From contig JAKMXF010000326.1 of assembly GCA_024704765.1 (NCBI GenBank), positions 186,001 to 250,000 on the forward strand: a stretch of 64,000 nt of DNA. Direction: 5' to 3'. Source of the DNA: Oopsacas minuta. Lineage: Eukaryota > Animalia > Porifera. A program made the position numbers and the translations under genes. Below the pieces are notes generated by a model, which saw nothing but the letters and a program-made list of their open reading frames with translations, made no database searches and was not told the DNA's origin. Shown piece by piece: positions 30,695-63,570 of this stretch; position 1 is the stretch's first letter; each line of letters begins with the position of its first letter.

Positions 30695-31233
30695 TTAATC
30701 TATGCAAGGATTATTTTTGAAAAGAAATTCAGCAAGATAATCAATTGGATCATCAGGATTGCTTTTAGAAATGTTTACAAGGCCTCTAGTGAGAGTTGGC
30801 ATAACAAATGACATTAAATAATTGCGCAAAGGCATTGCTTGACACTCAAGATAATCAAACTTCTGTAATTGGATAGCATTAGTCTGAGCAGTCCATATTG
30901 CTTCATTGGTACATTTTCTAGAGGCTTCTTCCATTTCCCAGTTGAACTTCCTGGTGAGCAATTTTGTATTTAACAAAGACCTATTTTCATCCTCTTCTTG
31001 AGAAATTAGAAATAATTCCTCAGCAGTTGGTCCATAATTCTTAGGATTACCTATCATATCGATAATTTTATGAAGGATATAATCCGGTTTAACATTATCA
31101 AGATGAGTTATGTCAAATCTAGAAATAAATATCTCAAACTCATCAAAAAAATTCAAAACTGTTGTATCGAGAGAATACATATTTTGATAATCACTAAATC
31201 TTCGGAAAAAGCCTTCTTCGTTATTATGAGTAC
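30695..31233 (-). CDS. AK7: Adenylate kinase 7, final coding exon (end of AK domain, coiled coil, Dpy-30 motif)
   Basis: Acceptor tttttag|GT ACT CAT at 31234/31233, phase 1. GTHNNEEGFFRRFSDY...VLNFFDEFEI...IGNPKNYG...QAMPLRNYLMSFVMPTLTRGL...PDDPIDYLAEFLFKNNP matches the AK7 C-terminus. Confidence 0.93.
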
Positions 31234-32240
31234 CTAAAAAAGTTGAATGAAATAGACATACAACTGAGTGGATTATGCTTAAACAGTAATATCGGCTGAT
31301 ACAGACCACATTGAAGTATATACAAGAAGCTCCACAGTATTGCATAGCTTCTAACTTTCGAAAATAATAAAAATAACACATAATGAGTAATTTTATAAAC
31401 GTACTGAAATTATGAGACAATTATGACATAAGTGGCACAAATATTTATGAGTATCAACTCTAGGACGAATGACCAAAATTTAAGGAATTTTAACAACAGA
31501 TACAAATAATATCTAGAATTCAAAGCTGCATAAGAGATCTGATGTATCAAATCGTAATGGAAATTCACAGTCAATACGATATAATGAGGAGAGTTCAACT
31601 CAATGAACCGGTAACGGTAAAAACTGACAAATATTTTCAAGGTGACAAAGATTGAGAAAGCATAAATCCCCAAACTAAATCCATGAGATTGGTCCTGACC
31701 AACCTTAACAAATCAGAGCGGTCATGATTAGAAGTTAAATAGGGTATAAACTTCGTATATTATAATCAATAACAGGGATAAACATAATACTCTGGTTATA
31801 ACAAAATGATGATTCATTTATATATATCGATTAATTCGTTGACTGGAGATCAACAACAGTTAAGACCCGTAACTTCTGAGGAAATCAAAATCTCTTCTTG
31901 ATATTCTTGATAGAGAAGGATTAAGTTTACAGATGCGAATAGTAGGAAGGTACAATGAAAGAAAGTACGTTATTGCTCGGGTAAAGGAACTTTAGAATTA
32001 CCAGATCTTGAGTGAACTTCAAACTAGCATACAGGGTAAAGAATAAAAATTACCGAGATTGGGGAGATTCCCAAACCATAAATCATTTTTGCAAATTGAT
32101 GTAAATTATTACAAGTATTTTCAACAAAATTTCCAAATAACAGAGTGGTCTTGAGTTGTCTCACACGTTTTTAGGAACTAAAACGAGCAAAGACATGAAA
32201 TTCGCAAATGGTAAATCTCTAAATTTTATAGCAGAATCTA

Positions 32241-43507: not shown

Positions 43508-43898
43508 AAGTAACAATCCAGTTCCTAACCTAATAATAATTGCATGGAAAATTTTTCAAATATATATTATACTAGAATTGATATATCTCTATGATTTCAC
43601 GTATTAAGATCTGATGAAACTACTTTGAGTGCAATTTAAGTATAAGACTGTTCTATAAAGCCACCCTCGTGCCAGCGTGAATTACTTAGCAAAAATGGCA
43701 AATATGAATGAGAGGACGCATAACCTAGGAAACGATTAGAATTTAACACATATATGATCCCCTGGGGGATAAAATATGCTCATATACCAAAAGCTTTGAA
43801 GGAATTGAAGACCCGTGTATAATAGACAACTACCACTAACTGCGAGAATTTGCAAAGATGTTAATGTCGAATTGTTTAGATTATAACATATAGCTAAC

Positions 43899-44263
43899 CT
43901 TCTACCATACTTTGGGGGAGAGAAATAAGCCTGTGTCTTAAAAACTCTTCTGTCGAATCAAGCTGAATGATATAATTAGGAAGTATACCTTGTTCTTTGT
44001 GAATAAATTCTACTTCAAATGTATCTTGCATTTGAGAAGTATTTCCAAAGAGTTCTTGTGATTGTTTGAGAGTCTTAGGAAATCCGTCCAAAATGTAACC
44101 TTGATTCTGACAGGGCTTGGAATTTAATTTTGATTTAACAAAGTCAATGATAAAATTATCAGAATAACGGCCAGAATTATTGTTGGAATTTTCTTTCAAT
44201 GATTCAAGGAGATCTTTAGCCTGCTCTGCACGTGTTTCATAATCTTCTCCAACATCAGTTACA
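43899..44263 (-). CDS. AK7: Adenylate kinase 7, penultimate coding exon (AK domain)
   Basis: Acceptor ttcttag|T GTA at 44264/44263; donor GAA G|gttagc at 43899/43898, phase-compatible with the last exon (G+GT=Gly). AEQAKDLLESLKE...FIIDFVKSKLNSKPCQNQGYILDGFPKT...LPNYIIQLDSTEEFLRHRLISLPQSMVEG is diagnostic of AK7. Confidence 0.93.
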
Positions 44264-46499
44264 CTAAGAAAATATGAAGAGCAAAACAATTTACAAACTA
44301 ATCAAGTGTCCTAACACCACATTATTCAACTACAGTCAGGGTTGCCTATTATGAACATCCCCAGATAAAAACTAAGCCATGGGCTCCCAATAAAACCTTC
44401 CAAGGGATTAGCATTACATATTTCAATGAATATTAAGCCTCAATATTATAAGTAAAAGTATTAGCCGAGTCGGTAATCACAATAAGCGACCCTGATTGTA
44501 TGGGGATAGGCCAAAATAGCGGCATTATGAACAAGCAAACATGTCCATGTTTGAATATGGGCAGCCATAATATAGAAGCCAAGTTTATGTAATTAGAGTG
44601 GGATATGGACCCGACAGGTTTAATATGAGACAACGTTTTTGTGAAACTCACATAGAAGCACGAGTAATATCGCAAAATGGACCCCAGTTCTGATTTTGAT
44701 TTCTAAAATCTAGCGCAAATAGGCCGTTTCCACCATTAAGTTCTTAAATAATTCCATGATCATGTTTAGGGCTTGTACTTACTAAATATACAACTAATTT
44801 ATGATTCTAATCATCCAGGGCAATTTGATTCCTCTTCTAACATTTTCATGCAATGCACAAGCTCGCTGTCATGTTGGAGATCATAATCCATTTAGAGTTT
44901 GGCAAAAGTTGAAGACTGAACAATATGGCAAAAATGTTCTATCGAAACAGATAATAGTGAGTCTCAATTTTAGATGAAAGTGAAGAAGTACTAAGTATAT
45001 ATAAGAACTTTTTGTATAATGAATTATATGGGTTCAGTAAATTGCGTGTATTTGATTTCACTTAATTGAATGTTACGTAATTTACCAAATATGTACATCA
45101 ATCATGATGAAACAATAGTTTCATGAAGATAATTTTAGAGACGGGTTCTGGGAGATACAGTGTATGTATCCATAAGCTCGGGTTTGAGCAATATTAGTTG
45201 ACATATTTAAGCCAATAAGTGTTTGAATAGAATTAGAAAACAATCTGATATCGCCTTGAACAGAGAACATGGATGAAACCGGAAATTTCGTAATACAGGA
45301 ATCACAACTAACATGTTTTCATAGTACAATGAATGGCGAGTAGATGTCTATATTTCGAATATATCCCCAAACATGTTAACTATTTAAGATATGCCCATAA
45401 AAGTATAACCAACACATATAAATATGGTAATCGTGTACGCACTTGTCTTCTCAAAACTTTGCTATGTCATCATCTGACTAAGTAATAACCCTTTTTCATG
45501 TTTAGGAGTCGATTTCGAAGCTGTTTCAAGCCTGTAGTATGTAAGTTAGCCAGATCTTCGATATATATATATATATATATGATATCATGATATCATGTAG
45601 TTCTTCCAAATAAGTGGAATTTTGGTGAAGTATGATACATTCCTCTGTTGTTGTGCAAATGTAGAGGAACAGATTTTAGCCATATCTTAAACAATTGCTA
45701 CTGCCTATTCATCAATAATACAGACTAATTAACCGTTCAAGTTAGATGTCCCAACTGTATTATCATGAATAGGAAACAGCCTATTGCGGATACACTAGTT
45801 ATACGAGTAGATGTCTATCATTAATATTTTTCAGATAAGGCCAGAATCAGTTAATGAACATTTGCATAACAACAAAGGATTGTATCTGCATTCAATCTAA
45901 TTCCAGATTTTTGAAACAACTACATGACATTATGATATCCAAAAATATCGAAGATTTAACTTACTTTTTACAATGATAAAACAGCCTCGAAAATGAAATC
46001 CAAAACTGCTTATGACTTAGTCAGATGATAACAAAGCGCATACGAAGTTCCATATAGATGTGTGATGGTGATAAATTTATGTGGCAGGTCTTAAATAGTT
46101 CACCTATCTGGACCATATAAGGTTTGGAAAATATCGATATCGGTTAAAACCTCCGATAGGATAAAATATATCAGAAAATCCCCCGATGCTATAAATATCC
46201 GTTAGGTATTTCTAAAAATAGATCAATTCAGATGCAAGTGAGCTTTCAATTATACAATTCGTATTGCCTTCAAATTTCAATCTATCATCCACCACCGTAT
46301 ATACTTATAGTTAAGTAATACACTCCTACCTAACTTGTATTTCTTAGCTCTAGAATTATAGCTTGTATTCTTCCTAATCTTCATTGTAGCGTTAGTCATT
46401 TAAGTATAATCGCTGATATAAATGATATAAACAAATTAATATTAAAATTATTTATATCAGCTGAAAATACTTACACCATATTATCAGTTAAGCTGTGTC

Positions 46500-57560: not shown

Positions 57561-58691
57561 ATCACTGGTAAATAATGTGAATTTCCGAAATCCAAAATGT
57601 GACAATGACGTCAAAATTCCGTCATGTGTGAACTTTCACCAAAGACTCGAAATTATCCGAGCTAGCCCCAAAATACCACAGTATGCAAAAATCAGCCCTG
57701 TGGCTTTCCTGTTTCTTCAGTCAATGCTGAACATAAGGTGGAAGCCGCTTAATCGGGACAGCTCGGAAGTCAAAGTTTTTCCCGGATAAACCGATTTTGA
57801 TATATTCAAGTACTCAAAACTAGTTTTCATAGTCGCAGATCAACACCAGAGACAAGTTATTAAACTACTAGAAAATCCTGATTTATCTAGGGAGTGAGCA
57901 AATTTAATATAATCTGGGTTTGTAATTGTAATAGATTCGTCGTCGCATTGTTATGGTAATAGAATATTAAAATTCCCACTTTTAAAAACAAACCACATTA
58001 CAATGATTCTGAATAAATATTCTATCGGTTAATCGGGATAAGAATTCCCTATTAACCGATTCGATATCCCAATTACCGATGATTTTCTATATAAGAAATC
58101 TGTTCCCAACCATTATCCCGTTTATGCGGATATCCCGATTAAACGGCTTCCACTGTGACAAACATACATATGTATACCTACACATATCTACAAAGATTCA
58201 TTACGTATTAATTGCATAGATTAGTGATTCTCAACCTGGGGTCCGCGGCCCCCAATATAATGAATCAAACAGGTCCGCGGAAGAAAAAGGTGAGAACCAA
58301 TGGTATAGATCATAACATTCTAATATGCATAAATGGGTAGGACCGGAATATGTTCTTGACTATGTTAACCCAATCATACCCAATTTAATCGCCCTATACT
58401 AATCTTGAGAATATATAGCTTTATATTAACTATTGTAAGGTAAAATTGCGAACAAATAACCAGTTCAACAATCACAAAAACAACATTAAACACCAACAAA
58501 AAATACACATCTATTATCTTCAATTGTAATGAGTAATGAGGTTAAGTACAGAATGCCATCTAGTATCGTTAATGAGTAATCACTTTAGTTAGTAGTTAGA
58601 AAACATCGTACACCGAGTATGTTGAGTGAAAAGTACACATATACGTAATATCTTTAGTGAAGGTAAGTACACATGAGGATATAGTATCCGT

Positions 58692-60364
58692 CACGGGTCT
58701 CTCAGAAAATCATATTGATCGAAAAAACGAGGTCCTTGAGATTTTTCATGATTCTTGTGTAGAATTTTGCGTAGAATCCGATTCTGTTGCCAAAAAAATA
58801 TTTCTCACACAAATTTTTGAGTTATTTTATATTTTTTTGTAAAAAAAAAATTTTTTTAGTTCCCATTTTTATATGTTGTCGGGTTGCTAATTTATCATAT
58901 TAGAATCATCGTTATCACTCATACATTGAATATAATACATCCATCAGTCACATATAGAATAAATTAAGTACTTATAAAATTAACGAAATTAATTTCCTTG
59001 ACAGCATTTAGTAGGTTTTCGCCGTAATTTTCTAGAGACTCGCTACATTGATAATTTCTCCAAACTTTGATGAATCGAGAATGAGCTGATTCAGCTGCCT
59101 GCTCTGAAACGGCGCCCAATCCCATACCAACTGGAAGGAATTTGGTGATAAATGGGATAACATGTCTGCACACTATATGGACTTTTGTTGAACAATTCAG
59201 CCCAGTTAATTTGAATGCTTCTTCAAATTGAAATATCGCCAGTTTGTAATCACCTTGTATCTTTTGCCCAAAACATGTCCTCACTACCTCTGAAAATCGC
59301 TTTAAAGCAATGCTGGATGAGTTGCTAATTGGAAAACCAATCTGCTCAACCATCAATGTAATTTTCCGCATTGCATTACCTTCAAATGCGCCTCCATGGT
59401 AAGAACTTCGAGATATGTTATTGTGCTTCAGTAATAATTCATGTGTAACTAACTCTTCTTCAGACATTGTAGCCACGATCGCATTGTACAACTTCTGACC
59501 AACCCCTAACAAAAGATGTAACTCGGGAATATTGAACATCTGCATGTAGTCAACCATCCATACACCAAGAGCCTCCATATCTTCTACACCATCACAGTCA
59601 ATCGCATGATTCTTTGAGTCGGAGTTATATTCTTCACACAATTTTTGGTACATCTCTGCATGATGTGCTGATGATCTTGATTTGAATTCGACATGATCCA
59701 ATCCACTTTTAGCATCCCATACACACCAAATGCATGGGTAACGTCCAAGCATAATACCCAGACAGAGAGCAGCGGCTTTGAGATCAAAGGTAAAAGATAC
59801 AAGGTGATTACAAACTGGCGATATTTCAATTTGAAGAAGCATTCAAATTAACTGGGCTGAATTGTTCAACAAAAGTCCATATAGTGTGCAGACATGTTAT
59901 CCCATTTATCACCAAATTCCTTCCAGTTGGTATGGGATTGGGCGCCGTTTCAGAGCAGGCAGCTGAATCAGCTCATTCTCGATTCATCAAAGTTTGGAGA
60001 AATTATCAATGTAGCGAGTCTCTAGAAAATTACGGCGAAAACCTACTAAATGCTGTCAAGGAAATTAATTTCGTTAATTTTATAAGTACTTAATTTATTC
60101 TATATGTGACTGATGGATGTATTATATTCAATGTATGAGTGATAACGATGATTCTAATATGATAAATTAGCAACCCGACAACATATAAAAATGGGAACTA
60201 AAAAAATTTTTTTTTACAAAAAAATATAAAATAACTCAAAAATTTGTGTGAGAAATATTTTTTTGGCAACAGAATCGGATTCTACGCAAAATTCTACACA
60301 AGAATCATGAAAAATCTCAAGGACCTCGTTTTTTCGATCAATATGATTTTCTGAGAGACCCGTG
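58692..60364. mobile_element. Rearranged Chapaev-type element with two inverted 3' ends (foldback), 1673 bp
   Basis: Arms 58692-59265 and 59792-60364 are reverse complements; the only difference I saw is A10 vs T9 in one tract. Termini CACGGG...CCCGTG with perfect 4-bp TSD ccgt. Confidence 0.93.
58964..59791 (-). pseudogene. 5'-truncated but stop-free C-terminal part of a Chapaev-type transposase
   Basis: FTFDLK...YPCIWC...PELHLLLG...FEGNAMRKI...STKVHIVCRHV...GAVSEQAAESAH has the same motif order as the two Chapaev3 copies. The first residues of the annotated ORF 59842 come from the inverted arm. Confidence 0.85.
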
Positions 60365-60699
60365 CCGTATACACATCTAGTATAGAATCTTGATAGTACT
60401 GAGGTAAACAGTGTTGGAATTAAGTGGGGATCTTATGAGTCTCATCAGGTCAGCTATAAGAGATAAGTACGATATAGTTTTTTAAGCTTTGTTTCGTCAG
60501 ACTTCGCGATTAATGTAATGCAATTCTTCACACTCGCTGATAGAATACAATTTGAAACAGTCATTACAAATTTATGTAAAATACCCCATCATCATACTCT
60601 AGAATCATATAATTGTCTCCATTTTCCAAATGTTACTCTTCAATTATTGACATACTTATGCGCAATAATAAACTTTGGCATGGGCCAATAAAATTTTTC

Positions 60700-63570
60700 A
60701 TAGAATTTTGAGGTGTCTATCTTCATAAATGTCTCGTTAATAACATTCACATAATCAATAACGGTAAGTGATGGAAACATAAGTGAACATCTATCAAACT
60801 CAACAAGTATATATTGATAAACAAATATCTAATAAATTCCAATAATTTATCAGTCGTTAAGAAATTGTAACAATTGCTGCATATATTAGTATTATTCATG
60901 TAGGAAAACATGGCATAACCAGCAACATAAGTAAGCATCCAAGTTGTGAAGGACTTTTCTGAATATTGGGAACATATTATAGTGTTTCCAAGATTTATTG
61001 AATTGATCAGAATTTGAGTCTTGATAACTTACATTTTAACAAAGGCATTCAAATAATTATTCAATGGAATTGGAACCTCTCAAGATGAAATTTTTAGGAA
61101 ACAAAAATTAGAATATTTGATAGGTGGAGTCTTCCTTCACCGTCTAGTATTTGAGTAAAGGTAATATGGTAGTGGCTGCCGGACATTTGTCTACAGAATC
61201 CGAAGTGATGTTCAAAGGGGTCGTTTTGAATTCTAGCAGTTAACAAGCATTGAAAATGCATTCACGTGTGAGTCGATTAACCATCAATGGTAATGTCATA
61301 CAGGTATGCCTAAAGCTAGTAAAAGTTTGCAGTGTTAATATCCAAATTTACCAGGTAGGGCATTCCAGCAATTTAGCCAAATTAGTACCTACCCAATAAT
61401 CTCTATAGGTGAATCGTACTGAAACAGAGTAATCATTATTGAAACTGATATTTACCCAACCCAGTTAATGTTAAAAACTCCCAAATATTACTTATTAAGC
61501 TTAGAAACTCACCGGTTAGACTATTTTCACTAAATTTCATTATCAATATTGAATGCTTTCGGTCCACAATATGTAGATTCAGGAAATATACTAAGTGGTA
61601 ACTTTACATTATGTCTTTCTAATTTTGATGACCAACAAGCTTTAGAAGTTAGACTAGGAGCCTTCTTTAGGATATTGGAAATGTCAGATTTGTATAATGG
61701 CATCAAATCCTAGATAGTAGGGGTGCAAACTCTGTAATATTTCGATGGGTTTTCTTGTGTTGACAATAAGATTTTTGATAGGAATAGAAACGCTGAAACG
61801 TCTTTTCATAATGTATCAAATTCAACCAATTGTTAAGCATGCATATTGTTATGTGAGCAATTTCAAACAATAAAATAAGAGTTTGGGTAGGGGTACAAGG
61901 ATGTGTGACTAAGGGTTGCGATGCTTTTGGTCACTAGAAAATAATGGAAATAAACTAACATTCAAAGGATACTTATCAGTACACAGAGCCTCAACGAATA
62001 AGTTACAAGCCTCAATATCGGAAATGATATGTTTGATTATGGGAAAAGAAGTTGGCTGACGAAGTGCCAAGTGGTATCAAACGAACAAGAGTCGAGAAAT
62101 TTTGGCAAGCTCGAAACCAATAATCGAAAATACAGTAGTCAGAGGATCTTCAGGGTTATTTATAGATCTGATAATTTTACCACTTTTAAAGCTCACATCA
62201 CTTAAGATATGCACTTCATCCATTTGAACAATTATGTGGCAGTCAATTTGGTCAAATGTTGTGGAAGTCTCCCTTAGAACTTTTAAGTACTAATTTTCTA
62301 ATCCGATAGGATTATTAATTTCAATATATTCCTTCGTGTGGTAGGAACAAGCAATTTGAAAATAGGATAAGTCAGAAATTGCAGGAGATTGCCCATAAAC
62401 CTGAGTCAGTATATTATAACAAAGATTATTTTCATCAGTGATTATATATTTCAGTTGGATTAAAAGTAAATTAAACAAAATTTTTATTGAACTACTGCAA
62501 ATATTAGTTTCAATAAATTCTTGATCATCACTATTAGTTAATAGAGCAGTTGCGCAAGTTTAGTTATGTTATCACGATTCATATATGAGCTTGTACTAAA
62601 ATGTTAGCGTCGGGAATTAGCGGTTGTAATGTATAAAATTCGATTTCAGATATAATGGGTTCTATTTCACATATGTCATTGATCTTGGATTCTGAGATCG
62701 GGATTGAGTGTTTTCCATGAAAAGCTTGAGTAAATATATTCTCGTCAATTTTTAGTGTCCTTTCAATGTATAGTATCTGACCTGATATGAGTATTTTTAG
62801 AAAAAAATTACATATATTTGGTGTCAGTGATAGTTCAGTCATTATTCAAATCAATTAAATCATTTTCATTTAACAAGTTTTGGAAGTTAGAATCCAAGAA
62901 TTCAACAACTTATTTCTCTGATCACCACTTCTCATCATAATTGCGTTCTGTAGCATCTCTTTCCCTAATCTCTAATTTCTTCGACCAGTCTGCTTTATCT
63001 GTTATGTAACTTGGGCAGTTGGGAAATATGGTTGGAACCGCAGTCTCCATCAAGGCCATCATCTCTCGAGGATTCACTTTCCATTCCACTCCATCAAAAT
63101 AGTTGATAATCCTCACAATGTCCTCTTCTCTGAAATGGTTGATGCATACCTAGACGACTAATTCAGTAACTAAGTGTGATAATTATCTACGTAGCTTGCA
63201 TTTAGAAAAAATAAGATGAAAATAAGAATCAATGAGATTATGTAATCAATCCAGTAAAATTGTAATTAATTTTAGAACAGTGCTGTCTATTTTGGAATTT
63301 CGATTTGCGTGGTATTTAGAATTCTTGTAATTCAATTCCACGTAGGGTATGTATAAGACTATAAGTGAAATAAATATTAAAGTAAGAATTGAAATTTGAT
63401 TAATTAATTAACTGACACGTAGTTTAGCAATTCCCTCATAATCCTCTCTCGGTCTAGAGATAGTCCCAAACCACCTCTCATACATCCCTTTATCTTTGGG
63501 AATGAAATGTTGGCGTATGGTGCTCCTGGCTCTGGAAATTAGAATTACGTGCCGGAACGACACAAGTCAT
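60700..63570 (-). mobile_element. THAP-domain P-element-like (THAP9-type) transposase remnant with intron
   Basis: THAP: MTCVVPA.NSNF...FPK..GMYERWFGTISR...LR|VCINHFREEDI...AVPTIF, with phase-0 intron 63150-63416. Core: LILLFEIAHI..LNNWLN; LYKSD..ILKKAPSLTSK...ERHNVKLPLSIF; C-terminal LTYVAGYA...ICSNC. Many stops. Confidence 0.85.

Follow-up and report, generated by a model that had tools for sequence, protein, structure and literature searches.

A foldback element with two Chapaev 3' ends in an AK7 intron of the sponge Oopsacas minuta

Does a palindromic transposon derivative that lies where a host gene may be transcribed through it silence its own family, or is it a by-product and passenger of that family? 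The question is raised by a stretch of the genome of the hexactinellid sponge Oopsacas minuta (hereafter the window, 64,000 nt, C326:186001-250000, on contig JAKMXF010000326.1). An earlier note on this DNA had described a very recently rearranged Chapaev derivative made of two 3' ends and had put it forward as a candidate hairpin silencer in the manner of maize Mu killer, which is an inverted partial duplication of MuDR (PMC3440606). The foldback was analyzed by repeat search, direct alignment and BLAST against its parent element, and whole-genome searches covered 365 contigs (61.46 Mb). Its features, in window coordinates, are as follows.

58688..58691, no strand: left TSD, CCGT, present as a single 4-bp site at the paralogous empty sites (L045-L047)
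58692..59268, minus strand: left arm, parent 2834→2258, starting CACGGG, 99.8% identical to the parent copy L038
59269..59788, minus strand: loop, parent ~2257→1738, coding from just upstream of the second catalytic D
59789..59800, no strand: rearrangement junction, 12-bp microhomology GGTAAAAGATAC / GGCAAAAGATAC, the full junction occurring at two genome sites only
59789..60364, plus strand: right arm, parent 2258→2834 inverted, ending CCCGTG
60365..60368, no strand: right TSD, CCGT, of which the empty sites carry a single copy
58964..59842, minus strand: residual frame of 292 codons, consisting of the C-terminal ~281 aa of the transposase and 11 codons from the right arm

The foldback is 1673 bp long (window 58692-60364, C326:244692-246364), is flanked by CCGT on both sides, and has the termini CACGGG at its start and CCCGTG at its end. 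Repeat search and direct alignment resolved inverted arms of 577 and 576 bp around a 520-nt loop; the arms of about 574 bp and the loop of about 526 bp given in the earlier note are the same structure counted without the 12-bp microhomology. Pairing was found at 574 of the 575 aligned arm positions, which excludes a chance origin of the arms, and the only differences between them were one A/T homopolymer indel and a G/A mismatch inside the junction microhomology. The repeat search found no direct-repeat families in the arms, whose unique sequence runs collinear with that of the parent 3' end.

BLAST against the parent placed foldback positions 1-1109 on parent 2834→1726 and positions 1098-1673 on parent 2258→2834. 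One arm together with the loop is an uninterrupted 1109-bp 3' portion of the parent, and the other arm is its last 577 bp inverted. The duplicated 577 bp hold 305 coding bases together with the 3' UTR and the 3' TIR, in agreement with the ~300 bp of coding sequence that had been assigned to both arms. The arms were 99.5-99.8% identical to the parent 3' end, as against 93-94% to the parent 5' TIR, and both are 3'-type beyond the shared terminal bases. This mapping supports the description of the locus as a Chapaev derivative built from two 3' ends, and the very recent date proposed for the rearrangement also counts as supported. At the junction, GGTAAAAGATAC (reverse complement, parent 1726-1737) meets GGCAAAAGATAC (parent 2258-2269), with 11 of 12 positions matching and 9 bp exact, and a check against 17 parent copies bore out the microhomology that had been noticed near 59792. 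The residual frame runs over 292 codons without a stop, as had been observed. It lacks the first catalytic D and keeps the second, together with the motifs C(2)C, LH, H(4)H and E.

When the 1673 bp were searched against the whole genome, 16 parent-type copies of full-length type were retrieved; they matched foldback positions 1-1109 at 97.7-99.8%, and each had a second terminus ~2.8 kb away. The complete copy at L038:1001-3834 is 2834 bp long, with TIRs of ~165 bp that are 93% identical; within the first 56-78 bp its left terminus does not differ from its right. One intron-less frame of 664 codons encodes the transposase, which measures 661 aa counted from the first ATG, and the whole 669-codon frame was kept, at >=99% identity, in at least 9 of the 16 copies. 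The complete parent copies had 4-bp TSDs (ACTT, GATA and TAAG), except for one copy with 3 of 4 positions and one without a TSD. Over the whole family, rearranged copies included, the 4-bp TSDs were CCGT, TGCC, ACTT, GATA, CTTT and TAAG, and all copies begin with CACGGG and finish with CCCGTG. The nearest protein to the transposase was "hypothetical protein LOD99_14221 [Oopsacas minuta]" (99% identity). Judged from these sequences, the parent family is very young and is probably active.

Pfam gave no family for the residual ORF and none for the full transposase, and a PDB sequence search found nothing. An AlphaFold model of the transposase was built from a 12-sequence alignment and had a mean pLDDT of 58, with 70-93 in the core. 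When this model (mean pLDDT 58) was compared with the PDB by Foldseek, all matches at E <= 0.001 (48 of 48) were RAG1, BbRAGL (amphioxus RAG-like) or HzTransib (Helicoverpa Transib), with a best E value of 3.6e-8 and TM of 0.43-0.50. A language-model look-up agreed with the RAG1/Transib fold and is a lead only. The motifs PCIWC, PELHLL and VHIVCRH, read by eye, were conserved in the 12-sequence alignment. Chapaev transposons are said to go back to Kapitonov and Jurka in 2007, and the CMC group reportedly to Yuan and Wessler in 2011. The hallmarks of Chapaev are a 3-4 bp TSD, invariable 5'-CAC...GTG-3' termini and the C(2)C, LH and H(4)H motifs of the DDE transposase (PMC4079192, which gives these motifs citing Yuan and Wessler 2011), and Chapaev forms a clade with Transib/RAG1 (PMC4411706). 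The parent resembles Chapaev transposons in its CAC...GTG termini, its 4-bp TSD, its C(2)C/LH/H(4)H motifs and its predicted RAG1/Transib-fold core. Since TSD, termini and motifs are all present and are joined by the fold match, the Chapaev label is supported. Unlike the described Chapaev families, the parent is a new family from a hexactinellid sponge, and in the literature searched no foldback derivative was described as a Chapaev feature.

A genome-wide search for further copies of the junction with different TSDs, which the earlier note had proposed, yielded one. With window 59730-59850 as the query and 40 of 40 candidates scored, the full junction was found at two genome places only, the window and C99:463317-463437. 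The second foldback (C99:462279-463952, L002:1501-3174) is 1674 bp long and has a junction identical to that of the window copy, from which it differs by 4 substitutions and 1 homopolymer indel. Its TSD is a perfect TGCC, whereas that of the window copy is CCGT, and the flanks of the two copies are unrelated right to the termini. Because the second copy combines an identical junction with unrelated flanks and its own TSD, the foldback appears to have transposed as a unit, and the simplest account of the two sequences is that the two-3'-end element originated once and was then cut and pasted at least once. Segmental or haplotig duplication as the source of the second copy was excluded by the unrelated flanks and separate TSDs. 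With an incomplete transposase, intact termini and two sites that carry their own TSDs, the foldback has the appearance of a non-autonomous element mobilized in trans. The residual frame of the C99 foldback contains a premature stop, so this frame is not under constraint. A truncated, dominant-negative transposase was rejected because of this stop, and nothing suggests that the fragment has a promoter of its own.

The window copy has a left flank that is part of an older repeat family. In three paralogues (L045-L047) the sequences that match the left and right flanks adjoin each other and run collinear with the window if only one CCGT is retained. By this alignment they are paralogous empty sites, which confirm the 4-bp duplication at the window site, and the perfect ccgt TSD reported before agrees with all three. 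The repeat family that served as the insertion target (window 58292-58691 and 60365-60764) has ~25 copies at 69-84% identity, and the target itself is near-palindromic, GTAT(C/A)CGTATAC. Just upstream of the foldback, short inverted repeats with TCCCGATTAA...CGG motifs occupy window 57738-58153 and 58017-58067 and may be a small MITE-like element. For the C99 copy no paralogous empty site was found; its flank has weak partial repeats that stop short of the insertion point. Decayed Tc1-like fragments surround the C99 foldback. At a distance of 3.4 kb upstream there is an Itch/NEDD4-like exon that encodes WW domains (C99:458437-458874, L052:6159-6596); no HECT exon was detected on contig C99.

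The earlier suggestion that two right ends are enough for mobilization holds for this element, but it is nearly trivial and weak as a general statement, because the parent ends are identical over at least the first 56 bp (56-78 bp) and 93% identical over 165 bp. What the element shows is that this Chapaev transposase does not require the left and right subterminal sequences to differ beyond ~78 bp. At position 286, A is present in every parent and in the window copy, whereas the C99 foldback has G, matched by the complementary C at its mirror position, 1389. This derived A-to-G change in both arms suggests arm-to-arm conversion, and it could also reflect mis-mapping of reads between the arms during assembly polishing; since it is a single site, we draw no conclusion from it.

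Inverted-duplication products were found at 4 of ~19 family loci and stem from three independent events. The foldback at C122:609583-611892 (L032:1501-3810), an independent product of a 98% subfamily, also has two 3' ends. It consists of parent 2834→1305 joined to parent 2004→2834, has arms that are identical over 812 bp and a TSD of CTTT, and its junction lies at a microhomology of its own, GTTACAGCTTTT / GTTACATCTTTT. It is the same kind of snap-back product as the window foldback, from the same genome, with different breakpoints. At C155:569955-571774 (L037:1501-3320; TSD TAAG), an 85-bp terminus mini-foldback, made of 35 bp forward and 50 bp inverted, takes the place of the first 1097 bp and adjoins parent position 1098. 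These loci show, at the level of sequence, that foldback formation recurs in the Chapaev family.

To form the window foldback, a parent copy shed the 1725 bp on its 5' side and acquired its last 577 bp a second time in inverted orientation, joined at the 11/12 microhomology, probably by a strand switch during repair or replication. The template switching that had been proposed is compatible with this, the microhomology join fitting either template switching or snap-back. In one route, a nascent or resected 3' end would have snapped back on its own strand: a 3' end terminating in GGTAAAAGATAC would have looped back onto GTATCTTTTGCC, which lies 520 nt farther upstream on that strand, and from there primed synthesis to the terminus. 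In the other route, during gap repair after excision, both invading ends would have copied a 3' end and the nascent strands would have annealed at the microhomology; the identity of the two TIRs over at least 56 bp makes this possible. Both the snap-back and the strand-annealing route fit. RAG/Transib cleavage chemistry puts hairpins on flanking DNA. Since it acts there and would yield a loopless palindrome, a direct product of RAG-like hairpin chemistry was rejected. The two-3'-end product was then cut and pasted as a unit, probably by transposase supplied in trans from intact copies, to give at least two insertions with different 4-bp TSDs.

We examined the host gene of the window insertion by retrieving AK7-like full-length proteins with the window exon and mapping them to the genome, with the exons handled one by one. 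The whole-genome protein search placed five AK7 segments collinearly on the minus strand of C326.

C326:310565-311341, minus strand: AK7 residues 13-275
C326:299996-300172, minus strand: AK7 residues 258-316
C326:268983-269264, minus strand: AK7 residues 312-405, the P-loop exon upstream of the foldback, outside the window
Window 43897-44265, C326:229894-230247 (protein map, residues 411-529), minus strand: AK7 residues ~411-537, the first exon downstream of the foldback intron
Window 30698-31270, C326:216698-217264, minus strand: last AK7 exon, residues ~518-706, including the Dpy-30 domain

The window exon 43897-44265 matched residues 429-546 of the AK7 PDB chain 9fqr_Xc at E 1.8e-27, and the Dpy-30 domain lies at window 30707-30832. 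A tblastn search of C326:250001-300000 did not find the N-terminal AK7 exons, which the whole-genome protein search located at 299996-300172 and 310565-311341. Upstream of the foldback, the exon ends with ...AACTAG and is followed by GTAATG, and the downstream exon is directly preceded by ...TTTTCTTAG. These are canonical GT/AG sites, and the reading phase, read by eye, is kept across the 38.7-kb intron between them. Because collinear exons on the same strand lie on both sides and have in-phase GT/AG sites, the window foldback, one of at least two insertions, lies inside this intron. For the same reasons AK7 extends past the foldback, which the earlier note had made a condition of its silencer proposal, and the AK7 pre-mRNA would cross it. 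The AK7 gene model is ~94.6 kb long (C326:216698-311341, window 30698-64000 and beyond) and has five large exons. Its introns of 10.4, 30.7, 38.7 and 12.6 kb are packed with transposon remains, and the gene as a whole is strikingly bloated for a compact 61-Mb genome.

Either strand of the foldback is predicted to fold into a 576-bp arm-to-arm stem, with an MFE of ~-1100 kcal/mol. Transcription of AK7 would give an intron with a perfect 576-bp hairpin, whose sequence corresponds to the 3' 577 bp of each member of the family. Dicer-like frames (two, both long) and whole Piwi-domain frames (at least five) are present in the genome, and Dicer and Argonaute/Piwi gene products could process the AK7-intron hairpin. 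Piwi-domain pieces also occur in repeated sets on contigs C97, C31, C41, C113, C358, C335, C302 and C55. These sets cover model positions 100-167, 164-242 and 240-301, with several sets per contig and many of them with stops nearby. Either a family of Argonaute/Piwi paralogues, expanded or decaying, or a repeat carrying a gene of this kind could account for them.

Palindromes are a known artefact of long-read sequencing, and a chimeric fold-back read could in principle have produced the structure. Yet the foldback is present at two loci on separate contigs that are 4 substitutions and 1 indel apart, each ending exactly at the element termini with its own 4-bp TSD, and both lie in the interior of large contigs (335 kb and 863 kb). 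The empty-site paralogues fit a true insertion, and in the asymmetric 520-nt loop the parent sequence runs on to a join at microhomology. An assembly or sequencing artefact is extremely improbable, and the two loci, their TSDs, the empty sites and the parent-continuing loop lend the assembled palindrome indirect support. If the palindrome is real, the window and C99 foldbacks might each have arisen in place from a separate full-length insertion, through gap repair that reused a favored microhomology. Sister-chromatid repair keeps flanks and TSD, the family yields foldbacks repeatedly, and the junction is the only derived character common to the two copies, all of which would agree with formation in place. 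However, the junctions of the two copies agree at every base, the T variant of the microhomology included, and the rearranged copies on C122 and C155 use other junctions, so that the breakpoint of an in-place event is not fixed. We consider separate formation very unlikely.

The reading that we prefer, with a probability of about 0.8, is that the element is a two-tailed, non-autonomous foldback from a young, probably active Chapaev family, chiefly a neutral by-product and passenger whose small-RNA output, if any, is incidental and has so far failed to stop the family. The competing reading is a trans-silencer like Mu killer, in which hairpin RNA from AK7 read-through would be diced and the small RNAs would repress the Chapaev transposase mRNA or mark the family. 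Much of the anatomy speaks for it: the foldback lies within an AK7 intron with coherent splice sites, its 576-bp stem is perfect, its arms are 99.5-99.8% identical to active copies, Dicer-like and Piwi-domain genes are present in the genome, and the arrangement parallels that of Mu killer (PMC3440606). On the other side, the family retains at least nine whole transposase frames at >=99% identity, and the foldback was mobilized after it had formed, so transposase would have been made in its presence. In addition, of the coding sequence the hairpin takes in no more than the last 305 bases, along with the 3' UTR/TIR, and intronic hairpins may be degraded or edited, not diced. The premature stop in the C99 frame, which speaks against constraint on the protein, likewise lends the silencer reading no support. 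Given the many whole frames and the later movement of the foldback, strong silencing of the family is not favored, and trans-silencing by this hairpin is unlikely. It is quite unlikely that the foldback in the AK7 pre-mRNA works as a hairpin that supplies small RNAs and restrains an active, RAG1-like Chapaev family, as a mobile silencer of the Mu killer type in a sponge. Such a silencer, if real, would spread with the family it represses, because the foldback can itself transpose, and the A-to-G change in both C99 arms would then be an arm-to-arm correction that keeps the stem perfect.

Taken as a passenger derived from two 3' ends, the foldback by itself is not a new kind of element. Internal-deletion derivatives of P, Ac/Ds and Mutator elements arise by abortive gap repair at microhomology. 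Like these, the foldback has lost the transposase gene and kept the termini, has a microhomology junction and normal TSDs, and would be mobilized in trans. Unlike them, it carries an inverted 3' copy in place of the missing 5' part, so that both ends are 3'-type, and is a palindrome with a 577-bp stem. Foldback transposons of the FB/NOF type have long arms of tandem subrepeats that do not derive from a coding 3' end, whereas the arms of the sponge foldback are unique and collinear with the parent 3' end. With Mu killer, the foldback shares a partial inverted duplication of a transposase gene, two copies of one TIR and a position where host read-through could make long hairpin RNA. In Mu killer, however, it is the 5' end of a Mutator element that is duplicated (TIRA and the 5' part of mudrA), in contrast to the 3' end of a sponge Chapaev. 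Mu killer acts in a plant with RNA-directed DNA methylation, where silencing is genetically proven, whereas the silencer role of the foldback is putative. The foldback further differs from Mu killer in having a 520-nt loop and in having, on the evidence of its second copy, itself transposed. In maize, inverted Ac/Ds duplications made by alternative transposition start siRNA silencing (bioRxiv 10.1101/2020.01.07.897926). They resemble the foldback in that a DNA transposon has been rearranged, parts of it are duplicated in inverted orientation, and the product is a proposed source of dsRNA against its own family. In the Ac/Ds case the ends of different copies react and flanking DNA is involved, whereas the foldback has an internal microhomology junction that fits a strand switch or snap-back.

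The foldback offers a clean natural case, in an early-branching animal, of how a cut-and-paste family, probably still active, gives rise to palindromic derivatives. The parent is identified, the breakpoint is mapped to the single base, a second independent event is at hand, and the rearranged element appears to have still moved. It also provides a locus at which to ask whether hairpin-triggered transposon silencing, proven so far in plants, may start in the same way in sponges.
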